Source of the DNA: Hamiltosporidium tvaerminnensis FI-OER-3-3
Lineage: Eukaryota > Fungi > Microsporidia
DNA: 64,000 nt
Reading direction: 5' to 3'
Assembly (NCBI GenBank): GCA_022605425.2
Contig: JAKIMF020000001.1
Location: 2,046,001 to 2,110,000, forward strand
Made by a program: the position numbers and the translations under genes. Below, piece by piece: positions 33,345 to 53,300 of this stretch. Every line of letters starts with the position of its first letter. Within the stretch, counting starts at the first letter, position 1. The notes under the pieces were generated by a model. It did not search any database, had not been told where the DNA came from, and was given only the letters and a program-made list of their open reading frames with translations.

Positions 33345-36300
33345 AACCGACATATGGGTAGAAAGAAAAATGTTAGCAGCGAAATATCGAATAATACCAA
33401 AATAAAGGCTGCAAACGACGCTGATGAGGTGATGAAGAGTGATAGTGAGATACAAGAATGTAAGCTACATCCACCGGCGATTCCCCTACCTTCCTCCTCC
33501 TACACAACAATAACACCTCCACCACCAAGCCAAACATGCAGTAAAATGCAAAATAGTGGGCTTGACACCTTACCTTCGCCTAATGCACCAGTTCCCTCTT
33601 CGGTTGAAGTCTCTGCGTGCGAGCCATCGTACGACATGACAAGCCCCTGTACTCTAGCTATTCCGGAAGGTAACAGGCTAATGGCATTGCGGACGATATT
33701 CGATTCCGTAACAGCCGACCCGAAGGAATGGCCTCGAATTGTTTTTTTTGCAGTACAGACAAGGTTTGAAAGAATGCCAAGAAATGGCTGGACAGAGCTT
33801 CACAGGTACTATAATGAGAAATTCGGCTGCACTGAAACTCTCGAAGTGTTAAAAAAATTGGCACAAAGTGAGATGGGAAAGGAAGTAAAATCAGAAGAGA
33901 ATGGAGAGCGACGTAGAATCGCCACTTGTCTCGCTGATACATGCACCTTGACCGACACCACGGAGTACCTAAACCTGAGAGATGAATTCTTGAGTAAAAT
34001 CAAAGAAATCTCGGAGAACGAAATTAGAAAAGTGGTGGTCCGAACTAGAAAACATCCAAATGAATTGGTTGATAGTAAAGTTCTGGATCTCATTAATCGA
34101 GTAGTCGGTGAATATGCAGGAGCTCATGTACCTGAGTCAATTACGGAAGCCGCGTATATCATGCAAGCTGCGCAGGTATGCTATGACGAGGCAACACGCA
34201 AAGAAAAGCCTAGATCCGCTTGGAAGGAAAACATAGAAAGTAAAATTTCTAAGTTAGTACTTTCCAAAGATCTTCTCGAGAAGGCTCGTAAGCAGGAAAA
34301 GCTCTCCACTTCGGAAACGAAGAGCCTTATGAAAATCATGCGAGAGTTTAATTTAAACTTGAGCAGCGTAACTGATCTTTCTGAGGCTTTAGTTAAGAAG
34401 AATGAGTCTTTGAATGTTTACGAGAAAAAAATTACGATGCATGAAAGTAGGAAGCAATTCCGAAAAGAGAATCGTATGTTTGAGCTTTTCCGAGGTCGAT
34501 TTTATCGTGGGTTATCTGAGCGTGTAGAATCCGAGCATGTGGTTAGCCGTGATGAAATTGTGAGTTTTTGGTCTACAATGTGGAACAAAAATGATGACAC
34601 AGTCACGTACGATGATTATTTGATTCCATTTGTATCAGATAATCATCCGACCACGTTTCCTTCACTTGATGAATTTGTAAATATCATTAATTGGCTTCCC
34701 AATTGGAAAGCTGCTGGAATTGATGGTATTTACAATTTTTTCATTAAGAAACTTACAACTCTTCACAAATATCTTTATGATATTGTGAAAGTTATATGTT
34801 TAGAAGGAACAACTCAAGCTGATTGGTTTTACTGCGGGCTTACGTATTTGATACCGAAAGGAATTCCACGAAGAGGCTCTGACTACAGGCCAATCACTTG
34901 TATGTCCAACCTCTATAAGTTAACGACAAAGTGTGTAACGAAAGTCGTTCAACTTGAAGTGGAAAGGCGAGGGTTGCTTGCAGAGAACCAACTAGGGGCG
35001 GTAAGAGGTGTGCAGGGAGCGAAAGAGCAGGCTCTACTGAATATTGCCTTAAATAAAGAGTATGGAAATAATCTTAAGGCAACATGGATTGATGTAAAAA
35101 AAGCTTATGATTCAATAGATCATGCTTATTTTACTCAATGCATTGAAAACCTTAATTTACCTGATTGGATCCTGAAATTTATTAAGGTAATTATATCAAA
35201 ATGGAAAATTGATATATCAGTAGGGCCTGAAAAAATCATGAGCAAGAAGATTGATAGAGGAATTCTACAAGGAGATAGTCTGTCACCTTTGTTATTTGTG
35301 TTGTGTATGGATCCATTAAGCCGAAAGCTTAATGAAAAATACACAAAAGTGACAGTACAAACAGATGCAGAATCCCATTCTACTAATCATCTCTTGTTTA
35401 TTGATGATCTTAAGCTCCTTGCAAAAGACAGCTCCACATTGAGTGCTATGACAGGCGAGGCAAAGGAATTTTTAGAGGTGATTGGCTTAGAGATTAACAA
35501 AGAGAAGTCAGCCACAAATGATACGTGTTGTGAAGATACTGCTACTCTTCTAGAAGGTGTTAGTGTTTACAAATATTTAGGAATAATAGAAGATAGCAGA
35601 GGAATCCCAACACGTAGCTCATTTGAAGAAGTACAGAGCAAACTTATATCAAGAGTTGAAAGACTTTGTCACACTAGATTAAATGCAAAAAAATTATTTT
35701 CTGCAATCTATCAACATGCGATATCGTTAATCAACTATCACATAGGAGTACTTCGACTTGAACCGGCTGACTTCTCTAAGTTAGATGATGCAGTGCGTGC
35801 GGTGTTGGTGAAGAATAAGATACATCTCCGCCCAGGATGTAAAGAGCGTTTGTATTTTCCTAGAACAGAACTTGGAAGAGACCTAAATAGTGTTGAGTTG
35901 CGATGCGAACATATGCTTCTGCAGTTCTTGGATTGTCTGGAAAAAAGTAAAGAAATATCAACTAGACGAGCAGCAATCCTCAAGGTGGAGAATAATAATA
36001 AAACCCATCTTGCACTAATAAAAAGCTTCGTAAAAGTAAAGTACAGGTTGGTAGAAGAAGTCACTAAGAAAAGTTTAGAAGAAGCTCAACTTGCAAAACT
36101 ATATAACGAAATAGAAAAACGAAAACTCCATTCAAAGTTATATAATGCAAGGAAAAATGAGCTTGTGAGTGTTAGTGACTCTTCAAGATGGCTAAAGAGA
36201 GGAAATATTAGGCCACGAAATGAAGCTGTGTTCTGCTATATCCAGGATAGAAATGTATTCTGGGGAGCAGATGGTGTGTGTCAACATTGCGGGAAGTCTG

Positions 36301-37163
36301 GTAAGACTGTAGATCATCTAGCAACTAGATGTGAAAAAATGCTAGGCCATGATTACACTAGACGGCATAATGAAGTGGTTAGATGCCTACACCTTCTCCT
36401 TCTAAATAGATATAAGTTTAAGTCTTCAAAACGAATAAGGAGCCACTCAGTTCAAGAAATTCTTGATAATGAGTATGCAGAGATAAGAGTGGACACCAGA
36501 ATTAAAACTGATGTTAAAATTCGGAATAACAGACCGGACATATTTATTTTAGATAAGAAGAAGAATAAGATAACACTCATTGAAGTAGGAATCACTTCCC
36601 AAGATTCACTTCAAATAGTTGAAACTGAAAAACTTAGGAAGTATGACCTGCTCTAGCCAATGAGTTGGGCCTTATTTATAAGTGTAGTGTTGAGATAATC
36701 CCTTATGTGATGACCTGGGACGGTATTGTGACAAAATACCATAAATCTCATCTTAAAAGACTAGAAATACCCATGAATGTAGAAGCATACATTCAGTCTA
36801 TAGTACTTAAAAAGACAGTCGAAACTATTTCCTTTGATCGACGAAGAGGACTTGAGTCAGGACTAAATGCCGAAGAGAGCTGGGAGAGTGCGTCAATGGG
36901 TGTTATTATGAGATCAGAGATGCATGAGGAACCAATACCCCCTTTAAAAGAAGCGAAAACAGAGGAAGATGGTGCCAAAAATTTTAAACCAAAATATAAA
37001 GCCCCCTTTATTTTACAAGGAGGAACCACTTTAGAGGAACCGACCAATAACATAAATGAAGAGTCGGATTTGGAAGAAGAGACAAAAGTGGTTAAAGAGG
37101 TAGAAGAAAACATGTAAAAATGGTAAAAAATATTTTAACCCAGAATTTTATTAAATAAAAAAA
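33345..37163 (+). mobile_element. Near-intact R4/Dong-clade non-LTR retrotransposon (RT, CCHC, restriction-like endonuclease) with 13-bp TSD
   Basis: TSD GTATTTTTAATTT at 33332-33344 and 37164-37176; ends in AATAAAAAAA; single long ORF. Confidence 0.93.
33354..37117 (+). pseudogene. Retrotransposon ORF (~1253 aa if repaired) with one 2-bp frameshift near 36651
   Basis: YRPITC, WIDVKKAYDS, GILQGDSLSP, HLLFIDDLKL, YKYLG, CQHC..DHLATRC, RHNEV, RPDI..IEV..EKLRKY; extra CT (CTGCTCTAGCC versus CTGCTAGCC in the copy at ~8700). Confidence 0.92.
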
Positions 37164-43207: not shown

Positions 43208-44120
43208 ATGGGCAATTATCTTTCCAAGCCTGAATTATCAAACAACAATTATTTTGTTGATACTGAATACCTAACAGCAATTGGATCCTGTATTCAAGGT
43301 TATAGAAAAGGTAATTTTATTCTAATTAGAAATGGAAGACAAAATATTGTTTTTAAACATGGAAAAACATGAAAATATTGAGTTTTCAATATTTGGTATA
43401 TTTGATGGACATGGAGGTTATGAAGTAGCAGAGTATTGTAAAGAAAACTTTATAAAATTTCTGAAAAAAGAAATTTCAAATGTAACTAGAAATAATTTAC
43501 ACGTATATAATTGGGAATCTATTTTTAAAAAAACTTTTATTGAAATAGATAATAGTTTATTAAAAGAAAAATACATATATTCATTTATCGGAACCACAGC
43601 ATTGTTGCTCTTTATTAATCATAATAAACCAATGAATGAGTTTTATATAATAAATTTGGGAGATTCTACTGCATTTAAATGTAACGAAACAAGGTATACC
43701 GTCTTGAACGAACATCATAATTTAAGAAATTCAGTGGAAGCTACAAGATTAAGGAATACCAATATAAACATTTTTGGCGATAGACTTGATGGAAAATTGG
43801 ATGTTACAAGATCTTTAGGGGATTTCTATTTTAAGAAAAACGAAAATAGAAATTTAGATAGTTGCGATAAAGAACTATCACCTGTACCAGAGTGCTTAAG
43901 AATCAAATTTGCTAAAGAAGAAGTTTTATCAATAATGAGTGATGGTGTCACAGATGGTATAGATTTTCCCTCATTACATAAAATAATTATACAGTATTCA
44001 TTTGAAAAAAACCAACTAAATTTTCTTCCAAAGAGAATATTTGAAGTTTGCTTGATGGAAAATCCTGATAAACAAAGATCGGAAGATAATATGTCAATAA
44101 TAATAATAAAATTAAAATAG
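43208..44120 (+). CDS. PP2C-family protein phosphatase (Ptc2/Ptc3-like); exons 43208-43310 and 43330-44120
   Basis: MGNYLSKP (myristoylation-type N-terminus), spliced QGYRKEMED, FDGHGG, NLGDS, VTRSLGD, MSDGV and EDNMS. Confidence 0.88.
43311..43329 (+). other. Predicted 19-nt spliceosomal intron
   Basis: AAAG|GTAATTTTATTCTAATTAG|AAATG; removal joins two overlapping ORFs and restores the QGxRxxMED motif. Confidence 0.8.
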
Positions 44121-50332: not shown

Positions 50333-53300
50333 TTTATTTAATAAAATTCTGGGTTAAAATATTTTTAACATTGTTTATATGTTTTCTTCTACCTCTTTAA
50401 CCACTATTGTCTCTTCTTCCAAATCCGACTCTTCATTTATGTTATTGGTCGGTTCCTCTAAAGTGGTTCCTCCTTGTGAAATAAGGGGTGTATTATTTTT
50501 TAGTTTAAATTTTTTTGCACCATCTTCCTCTCTCTTCTCTTCTTTTAAAGGCGTTCTTGGTTCCTCATGCATCTCTGCTCTCATAATAACACCCATTGAC
50601 GCTCTCTCCCAGCTCTCTTCGGCATTTAGTCCTGACTCAAGTCCTCTTCGTCGATCAAAGGAAATCGTTTCGACTGTCTTCTTAAGTACTATAGACTGAA
50701 TGTATGCCTCTACATTCATGGGTATTTCTAGTCTTTTAAGATGAAATTTATGGTATTTCGTCACAAACACATCCCAGGTCATCACATAAAAGATTATCTC
50801 AACACTACGCCTATAAATAAGACCTAACTTATTGGCTAGCAGGTCATACTTCCTAAGTTTTTCAGTTTGATCTATTTTAAGTGAATCTTGAAAAGTGATT
50901 CTTACTTCAATGAGTGTTATCTTATTCTTCTTTTTATCTAAAATAAATATGTCCGGTCTGTTATTCCGAATTTTAACATCAGTTTTAATTCTGGTGTCCA
51001 CTCTTATCTCTGCATACTCATTATCAAGAATTTCTTGAACTGAGTGACTCCTAATTCGTTTTGAAGACTTAAACTTATATCTATTTAAGAGAAGTAAGTG
51101 TAGGCATCAAACCACTTCATTATGCCGTCTGGTGTAGTCATGGCCAAGCATTTTTTCACATCGAGTTGCTAGATGATCTACAGTCTTACCGGATTTATTG
51201 AAGTGTTGACACACACCATCTGCTCCCCAGAATACATTTCTATCCTGGATAAAGCAGAACACAGCTTCATTTCGTGGCCTAATATTTCCTCTCTTTAGCC
51301 ATCTTGAAGAGTCACTAACACTCACAAGCTCATTTTTCCTTGCATTATATAACTTTGAATGGAGTTTTCGTTTTTCTATTTCGTTATATAGTTTTGCAAG
51401 TTGAGCTTCTTCTAAACTTTTCTTAGTGACTTCTTCTACCAACCTGTACTTTACTTTTAAGAAGCCTTTTATTAGTGCAAGATGGGTTTTATTATTATTC
51501 TCCACCTTGAGGATTGCTGCTCGTCTAGTTGATATTTCTTTACTTTTTTCCAGACAATCCAAGAGTTGCAGAAGCATATGTTCGCTTCGCAACTCAACAC
51601 TATGTAGGCCTCTTCCAAGTTCTGTTCTAGGAAGATACAACCGCTCTTTACATCCTGGGCGGAGATGTATCTTATTTTTAACCAACACCGCACGCACTGC
51701 ATCATCTAACTTAGAGAAGTCAGCCGGTTCAAGTCGAAGTACTCCTATGTGGTAGTTGATTAACGATATCGCATGTTGATTGATTGCAGAAAATAAATTC
51801 TTTGCATTTAATCTAGTGTGACAAAGTCTTTCAACTCTTGATATAAGTTTGCTCTGTACTTCTTCAAATGAGCTACGTGTTGGGATTCCTCTGCTATCTT
51901 CTATTATTCCTAAATATTTGTAAACACTAACACCTTCTAGAAGAGTAGCAGTATCTTCACAACACGTATCATTTGTGGCTGACTTCTCTTTGTTAATCTC
52001 TAAGCCAATCACCTCTAAAAATTCCTTTGCCTCGTCTTTCATAGCACTCAATGTTCGGCTGTCTTTTGCAAGGAGTTTAAGATCATCAATGAACAAGAGA
52101 TGATTAGTAGAATGGAATTCTGCATTTGTTTGTACTGTCACTTTTGTGTATTTTTCATTAAGCTTTCGGCTTAATGGATCCATACACAAAACAAATAACA
52201 AAGGTGACAAACTATCTCCTTGTAGAATCCCTCTATCAATCTTCTTGCTCATGATTTTTTCAAGCCCTACTGATATATCAATTTTCCATTTTGATATAAT
52301 TACCTTAATAAATTTCAGGATCCAATCAGGTAAATTAAGGTTTTCAATGCATTGAGTTAAATAAGCATGATCTATTGAATCATTAGCTTTTTAACATCAA
52401 TCCATGTTGCCTTAAGATTATTTCCATATTCTTTATTTAAGGCAATATTCAGTAGAGCCTGCTCTTTCGCTCCCTGCACACCTTTTACCGCCTTTAATTG
52501 GTTCTCTGCAAGCAACCCTCGCCTTTCCACTTCAATTTGAACAACTTTCGTTACACACTTTGTCGTTAACTTATAGAGGTTTGACATACAAGTGATTGGC
52601 CTGTAGTCAGAGCCTCTTCGTGGAATTCCTTTCGGTATCAAATACGTAAGCCCGCAGTAAAACCAATCAGCTCGAGGTGTTCCTTCTAAACATATAACTT
52701 TCACAATATTATAAATATATTTGTGAAGAGTTGTTAGTTTCTTGGTGAAAAAATTGTTAATACCATCAATTCTAGCAGCTTTCCAATTAGGGAGCCAATT
52801 AATAATATTTACAAATTCATCAAATGAAAGAAACGTGGTCGGATGATTATCTGATACAAATAGAATCCAATAATCATCATACGTGAGTGTGTCATCATTT
52901 TTGTTCCACATTGTAGACCTGAAACTCACAATTTCCTCACGACTAACCACATGCACGAATTCTACACGCTCAGATAACCCACGATAAAATCGACCTTGGA
53001 AAAGCTCAAACATACGATTCTCTTTTCGGAATTTCTTCCTACTTTCATGCATCTTGATTTTTTTTTCTAGTAAACATTCAAAGACCCATTCTTCTTAACT
53101 AAAGCCTCGGAAATATCAGTTCCGCTGCTCAAGTTTAAATTAAACTCTCGCATGACTTTCTTAAGGCTCTTCGTTTCCGAAGTGTAAAGCTTTCCCTGCT
53201 TAAGAGCCTTCTCGAGAAGATCTTTGGAAAGTACTAACTTAGAAATTTTACTTTCTATGTTTTCCTTCCAAGCGAATCTAGGCTTCTCTTTACGTGTTGC

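Follow-up and report, generated by a model that had tools for sequence, protein, structure and literature searches.

Positions 43311 to 43329 of the window, the 64,000-nt stretch of the Hamiltosporidium tvaerminnensis genome analyzed here (scaffold_1:2,046,001-2,110,000), very probably form a genuine U2-type spliceosomal intron, 19 nt long and of phase 1, in the single PP2C (PPM-family) gene; judged from sequence, we put the probability of this reading at about 85%. The intron corresponds to scaffold_1:2089311-2089329 of an assembly with 21,638,905 bases in 17 contigs and a GC content of ∼26%. We favor this reading because of the intron signals, the homology of exon 1 to other PP2C N termini, an intron-less nearest homolog, and the conservation of exon 1. 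The 19-nt intron is an extra, slightly shorter example of a class of tiny introns already published for this genome.

A preliminary description of this DNA had proposed that removal of a 19-nt gap joins two overlapping open reading frames (ORFs); its coordinates and sequence matched the window exactly when read again. The gene model is given in Table 1.

Table 1. Features of the PP2C locus, in window positions, with the share of variable alignment columns among five assemblies
Feature	Position	Strand	Reading	Variable columns
Upstream flank				8.2%
Exon 1, PP2C gene	43208..43310	+	ATG 43208-43210; 34 codons (MGNYLSKP ... QGYRK) plus the G of a split GAA	0/103
Probable intron, 19 nt, phase 1	43311..43329	+	GTAATTTTATTCTAATTAG; from ORF joining and the species' signals	0/19
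5' splice site GTAATT	43311..43316	+	T at +5; exon ends in AG	
Branch-site motif TTCTAAT	43320..43326	+	common to confirmed introns; putative branch A 43325	
3' splice site AG	43328..43329	+	read from sequence	
Exon 2	43330..44120	+	AA completes GAA (E), then MED (ATG GAA GAC); TAG stop 44118-44120	1.6% (10 synonymous, 3 non-synonymous)
Likely poly(A) signals AATAAA, ATTAAA	44105-44110, 44111-44116	+	overlap the end of the coding sequence; predicted from sequence	
Downstream flank				11.4%

The intron lies 103 nt into the coding sequence. Unspliced, the exon 1 frame ends at a TGA stop at 43370, and the exon 2 frame, an ORF of 262 codons from the ATG at 43332, is shut upstream by a TAA at 43323-43325; removal of the intron joins 83 open codons upstream to the 262 downstream. 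Six GT..AG pairs restore the frame, and only 43311-43329 keeps both QGYRK and MED, which supports this segment as the intron. The alternative donor at 43299, which reads GTTATA and would give an intron of 31 nt (43299-43329), deletes GYRK, as had been pointed out before. The spliced reading contains both the QGYRK-E-MED junction and the MGNYLSKP N terminus that had been predicted from it. With respect to the likely poly(A) signals, an A.UAAA motif occurs ∼20 nt upstream of 3' ends in H. tvaerminnensis (PMC10542269, Table S3). Elsewhere in the window, two ORFs of non-LTR retroelements contain the Pfam reverse transcriptase domain RVT_1 (33354-36656, plus strand; 51107-52252, minus strand), in keeping with a repeat-rich genome.

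The two frames overlap by ∼44 nt, and the shift required to pass from one to the other is +1, so the same protein ends might be connected by a programmed +1 ribosomal frameshift in the overlap (43326-43369), with no splicing. Such a frameshift would place at least 6 extra residues (GNFILI...) between QGYRK and MED and break the R-x-x-MED spacing seen in homologs with the motif, and splice signals account for the geometry exactly; we regard frameshifting as extremely improbable.

The identity of the gene is set by exon 2. Homology searches were run exon by exon, with each exon as its own query, and the exon 2 ORF was assigned to PP2C (Pfam PF00481) with an E value of 2e-32 and a score of 113.3 bits against a cut-off of 20.3, covering profile positions 15-228 of 255. 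No PP2C locus other than the one in the window was found in the genome. Solved PPM1A structures match exon 2 at an E value of 5e-18, and in the human PPM1A structures, query residue 18 falls on chain residue 53, which places the first methionine of exon 2 on residue 36. The QGxRxxMED motif is present only in the spliced reading, in which exon 1 contributes QGYRK, the split codon the E, and exon 2 MED. In human PP2C-alpha, the arginine of QGxR binds substrate phosphate. The spliced product would start with MGNYLS, which fits the usual consensus for N-myristoylation: Met-Gly at the N terminus and Ser or Thr as the sixth residue. Since the genome has a gene for N-myristoyltransferase (C1:641417-641860; E value, 2e-44), this N terminus could be lipidated.

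All public proteins of the gene are 262 amino acids long, including the model on a 2.68-Mb contig of the 2023 assembly. The entries TBU09823.1, TBU04212.1, TBU11506.1, and TBU12735.1 and the 2023-assembly model are without the first 35 residues; a word search found no longer near-identical protein, and the 297-residue product is absent from protein collections. Because every public model has 262 residues, exon 1 and the intron are unannotated, and the expectation that gene finders would miss this intron has been borne out, with all models starting at MED. The same uniformity is what one would see if there were no splicing at all, with the 262-residue, MED-starting ORF being the functional gene and the upstream ORF being either a relic cut off by a 19-nt (3n + 1) insertion or a uORF; the annotators had Iso-Seq data at hand, and the donor is non-consensus at +5. 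From what is known of the human PP2C-alpha structure, however, a PP2C starting at MED would be without the QGxR arginine and the first strand, and its metal-binding Glu and Asp would be residues 2 and 3. The homology and conservation of exon 1 bear on this alternative further.

Exon 1 alone matched no Pfam family, and among PDB entries it gave no PP2C match, only a spurious one to SdrG at an E value of 0.5. Because exon 1 is too short for generic searches, we turned to a profile made specifically for PP2C N termini. When exon 2 was run with HMMER against 1.84 billion representatives, many PPM1A/Ptc2-like proteins came back, and their N termini read MGxxLSxP...QGWRxxMED; the conserved QGxRxxMED motif and MGxxLS start, which the preliminary description had listed as known features, are seen in these homologs. 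Of the 55 homologs with the motif near the N terminus, 27 place MED after exactly 35 residues, and a start of MGxxLSxP is common. The profile comprises 34 ungapped columns from 19 PP2C N termini and ends before the residue that precedes MED, so that it holds no exon 2 content. When it was run against the 1790 six-frame, stop-to-stop pieces of the window, exon 1 was the best match (E value, 2.2e-4; runner-up, 0.22), and profile positions 1-34 aligned on M43208..K43309 from end to end with no gaps.

The nearest homolog outside the genus, P0011, is a protein of 288 amino acids (E value of 5e-32 to exon 2) encoded by an uninterrupted ORF on a 24-kb metagenome contig with 42% GC. Its residue 36 aligns to the first methionine of exon 2, and BLASTP of exon 1 against residues 1-40 of P0011 aligned residues 1-33 with 11/33 identities, no gaps, and an E value of 1e-6. 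The 34 residues of exon 1 plus the split codon make 35 residues, which is the register of P0011, PPM1A, and many other homologs. Alignment with PP2C homologs, which had been suggested as a check, therefore favors the spliced reading: an intron-less protein has the same N-terminal length, and MED follows 35 residues in both. If the 19 nt were an insertion that cut off an upstream relic, it would have to carry the species' splice signals and have the exact length that restores this 35-residue register.

Three other homologs were considered and set aside. P0012, which starts at MED, had been a candidate parallel for the intron, but its contig is open upstream and Asn-rich, pointing to another kind of organism. 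P0002 and P0017 start with MQG and come from eukaryotes with 17% and 29% GC, respectively. All three are uninformative on Hamiltosporidium. P0017 (on a Logan ERR3200806 contig of the unrelated eukaryote with 29% GC) is annotated from MQGLR, and the sequence upstream of this contains an MGNVHPI start, then GTAATT and an apparent T-rich intron of roughly 60 nt, at another position than that in the Hamiltosporidium PP2C; here, too, the N terminus has seemingly been lost to an unannotated intron.

We compared the locus across five assemblies from two species: the 2023 assembly, GCA_004325075.1 (two contigs), GCA_004325065.1, and H. magnivora GCA_004325035.1. No difference among the five was seen in exon 1, the intron, or the start of exon 2. 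Exon 1 would hold ∼10 variable sites if it varied at the flanking rate; the absence of any fits the coding rate, and we conclude from these sequences that exon 1 is conserved as coding sequence. The intron is equally invariant, but divergence among the five assemblies is low and 19 sites are too few, so this is uninformative. GCA_004325075.1 holds two slightly different copies of the PP2C locus (PITK01000648.1 and PITK01001170.1), with exon 1 and the intron intact in both; the copies may be haplotypes or a segmental duplication.

Conservation also weighs on two of the alternatives. A MED-starting protein would be consistent with the purifying selection on exon 2 itself (10 synonymous and 3 non-synonymous changes). 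A relic upstream of it would decay, though, and exon 1 has kept its ATG and open frame with 0/103 variable columns against 8-11% in the flanks; together with the splice signals and the register, this makes the absence of splicing improbable in our view. A pair of ORFs in different frames is also what an indel error or gene decay typically leaves behind, and the locus might accordingly be a pseudogene or its frameshift an error of sequencing or assembly. Five assemblies from different isolates, technologies, and two species share this sequence, no second PP2C locus was found in the genome, and the 10:3 ratio of synonymous to non-synonymous changes points to constraint; we think it very improbable that the frame is simply broken.

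The intron signals were judged against those of the species. Angst et al. (2023, G3, PMC10542269) reported an H. tvaerminnensis assembly of 21.64 Mb in 17 contigs with 26.6% GC and 98 predicted introns, of which 17 were confirmed by Iso-Seq, with splicing of 7.5-92%; the confirmed introns range from 20 to 68 nt, 13/17 being 20-28 nt (Table S2 of that study). We extracted the sequences of all 17 from the Table S2 coordinates. The 13 short introns share a layout of GTAAGT, a T-rich spacer, and (T)CTAATT(T)(A)AG. Their donor is GTAAGT, or GTAAGC in one, always with G at +5, and 12/13 end in CTAATT(T)(A)AG, the thirteenth ending in TTAATTTAAG. The shortest confirmed intron is GTAAGTATATTTCTAATTAG (20 nt; scaffold_5:731175-731194). 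The 3' part of the PP2C intron, TTCTAATTAG, also ends five confirmed introns, among them this 20-nt one. The preliminary description had treated the CTAAT that abuts the acceptor as an oddity; in this genome it is the rule, given the 12 of 13 short introns that have it.

The PP2C intron has the expected GT...AG termini (GT at 43311-43312, AG at 43328-43329). Its donor, GTAATT, agrees with GTAAGT at positions 1-4 and 6 and has T at +5, and in this it departs from the short class; the earlier remark that the donor is not GTAAGT was to the point, as T at +5 is truly atypical against 13/13 short confirmed introns. With 19 nt, it is also outside the confirmed range, one base under the published minimum of 20. 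It is absent from the 17 confirmed introns, 0/17 of which lie on scaffold_1. The preliminary description had further inferred an ultrashort, gene-internal intron class. A gene-internal intron of 19 nt is very probable; the novelty of the class does not hold, since introns of 20-28 nt were already published (PMC10542269).

In the 64-kb window, the motif GTAANT-N(4-14)-CTAATTAG has a single match, at the PP2C intron, with 0.10 expected. Genome-wide, GTAAGT..CTAATTAG has 16 matches against 2 in the control, with lengths of 17-25 nt and none of 19 nt, and GTAATT..CTAATTAG has 6 against 4 and is not enriched. Matches to GTAA[AC]T..CTAATTAG genome-wide (8 against 11) and to GTAANT-N(1-6)-CTAATT-N(1-2)-AG (38 against 29) are noise. 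Because the GTAATT form is no commoner than in the control, weight falls on the position of the motif in the PP2C gene, precisely where a +1 frame correction is needed.

Ten of the GTAAGT..CTAATTAG matches, 17-23 nt long, are outside Table S2. Among them are C1:1403419-1403439, C2:531234-531255, C2:1692978-1692997, C2:1739405-1739424, C2:1739691-1739713, and C12:1724817-1724837, and several of the ten join long frames (233/47, 89/96, 97/34, 88/44, and 52/100 codons). Such matches may represent additional introns, whether unannotated or already counted in the 98 predicted.

Exactly 19 nt is the length of 4/6 GTAATT..CTAATTAG matches, and all four join open frames in compatible phase. No other 19-nt matches to GTAANT..CTAATTAG occur in the genome; the four represent three independent loci, so the numbers are small. 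Besides the PP2C intron, a 19-nt match occurs at two VPS9 loci, where it joins 58/216 codons with the VPS9 domain downstream. The third case (C2:1680240-1680258, minus strand) is a candidate intron, GTAATTATTTTCTAATTAG, which joins 108/49 open codons and would link a 67-codon hydrophobic ORF, counted from its own ATG, to the 49 codons; its exons gave no convincing Pfam family and no homolog in a word search. Five extra GTAATT matches from a looser motif joined no long ORFs, and the 17- and 18-nt GTAAGT..CTAATTAG matches (C12:2358615 and C10:592142) are without flanking ORFs. Lacking long compatible ORFs, these rejected matches serve as a negative control.

The VPS9 loci (C2:518214-518412, plus strand, and C2:569551-569749, minus strand) belong to an inverted segmental duplication whose copies lie ∼51 kb apart and are 96.5% identical over 2.4 kb. 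Both copies have a published 21-nt intron and, 160 nt downstream of it, the unannotated 19-nt GTAATT candidate.

All GTAAGT-donor CTAATTAG matches that join ORFs are at least 20 nt long. That the ORF-joining 19-nt cases all have U at +5 and those with GTAAGT are at least 20 nt suggests a trade-off, and one could propose that 19-nt introns make up a subclass of their own, at the smallest size that a reduced spliceosome can physically handle, with the +5 pair given up. On this view, the last base could go only at the cost of the +5 pair with U1 and with the unusual ACUGAGA box of U6, and the weakened introns might then be spliced inefficiently. We consider the proposal unlikely. If it were true, such introns would tune how much full-length PP2C, probably myristoylated, is made relative to a product that is truncated or without function.

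U1, U2, and U6 are encoded in the genome, with recognition boxes that are usable for the PP2C intron. U1 lies at C11:188752-188904, with ACUUACCU near its 5' end; U2, with a canonical GUAGUA, lies at C10:549589-549790; and U6 lies at C12:1091599-1091718 on the minus strand, its ACAGAGA box reading ACUGAGA. The U of ACUGAGA would form a Watson-Crick pair with the +4 A of GUAAGU donors. In pairings worked out by hand, AG/GUAAUU, with the slash at the exon-intron boundary, would pair with U1 at every position from -2 to +4 and again at +6, and its +4 and +6 bases would pair with the U6 box. UUCUAAU and GUAGUA would be held together by four Watson-Crick pairs plus a wobble, leaving A43325 bulged. 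We infer the splicing itself, these snRNA pairings, the branch point, and the myristoylation from the DNA.

On this model, AG/GUAAUU would be recognized by U1 and then by U6, only the +5 pairing being lost. The GUAGUA of U2 would pair with UUCUAAU and bulge the putative branch A (43325), which lies 4 nt ahead of the intron's final base, and the AG at 43328-43329, a few bases past the branch A, would be used as the acceptor. Splicing would yield an mRNA of 297 codons, and its product would have a PPM1A/Ptc2-type N terminus with a candidate N-myristoylation signal (MG...S), QGxR, and exactly 35 residues ahead of MED, which binds metal. Without splicing, the RNA would give only a 54-residue peptide or, from the internal ATG, a MED-starting protein.

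The intron corrects the gene model of the only PP2C of this parasite of the water flea Daphnia magna, adding 35 residues, among them the arginine motif that binds phosphate and a likely lipidation signal. With it, the shortest intron length inferred for H. tvaerminnensis drops from 20 to 19 nt, and U at +5 of a donor may be tolerated. The 98 predicted introns are suggested to be an undercount of the real number, and truncated N termini in microsporidian annotations are worth checking for such introns. The general picture of microsporidian splicing is unchanged.

With PPM1A/PPM1B and yeast Ptc2/Ptc3, the Hamiltosporidium protein shares the PP2C domain, an MGxxLSxP start, QGxRxxMED, and 35 residues before MED. 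It is shorter (297 codons), lacks a C-terminal extension, and is highly diverged, with at most 40% identity to proteins outside the genus and 36% to its nearest homolog. Its intron and the confirmed 20-nt intron at scaffold_5:731175-731194 are alike in their GTAA donor, T-rich spacer, TTCTAATTAG end, gene-internal position, and length not divisible by three. Unlike the confirmed short introns, the PP2C intron is 19 nt long, has T rather than G at +5, is unannotated, and lies on scaffold_1.

Introns of Encephalitozoon cuniculi and other microsporidia are ∼23 nt or longer; the PP2C intron is shorter than these and is located in the gene of a signaling enzyme. Our literature search found no mention of a microsporidian intron of 18, 19, or 20 nt, and the 20-nt one is known from Table S2. 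E. cuniculi and other microsporidia likewise combine a reduced spliceosome with tiny introns whose branch site is near the acceptor (Grisdale et al. 2013, PMC3629993; Whelan et al. 2019, PMC6349667). Splicing in such systems is often inefficient, at <20% for the short introns of E. cuniculi (PMC6349667), and most microsporidian introns occur at the 5' ends of genes for ribosomal proteins (PMC10815200).

Among eukaryotes, 19 nt is not the shortest intron length: ultrashort introns measure 18-21 nt in chlorarachniophyte nucleomorphs, 16-17 nt in mikrocytids, and 15-16 nt in heterotrich ciliates (PMC10245619). The PP2C intron resembles them in length range and in its constrained sequence. Those systems have hundreds of near-uniform introns, whereas H. 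tvaerminnensis has about a hundred or fewer, ranging from 19 to 68 nt, and their lineages and splice motifs are unrelated to those of H. tvaerminnensis.
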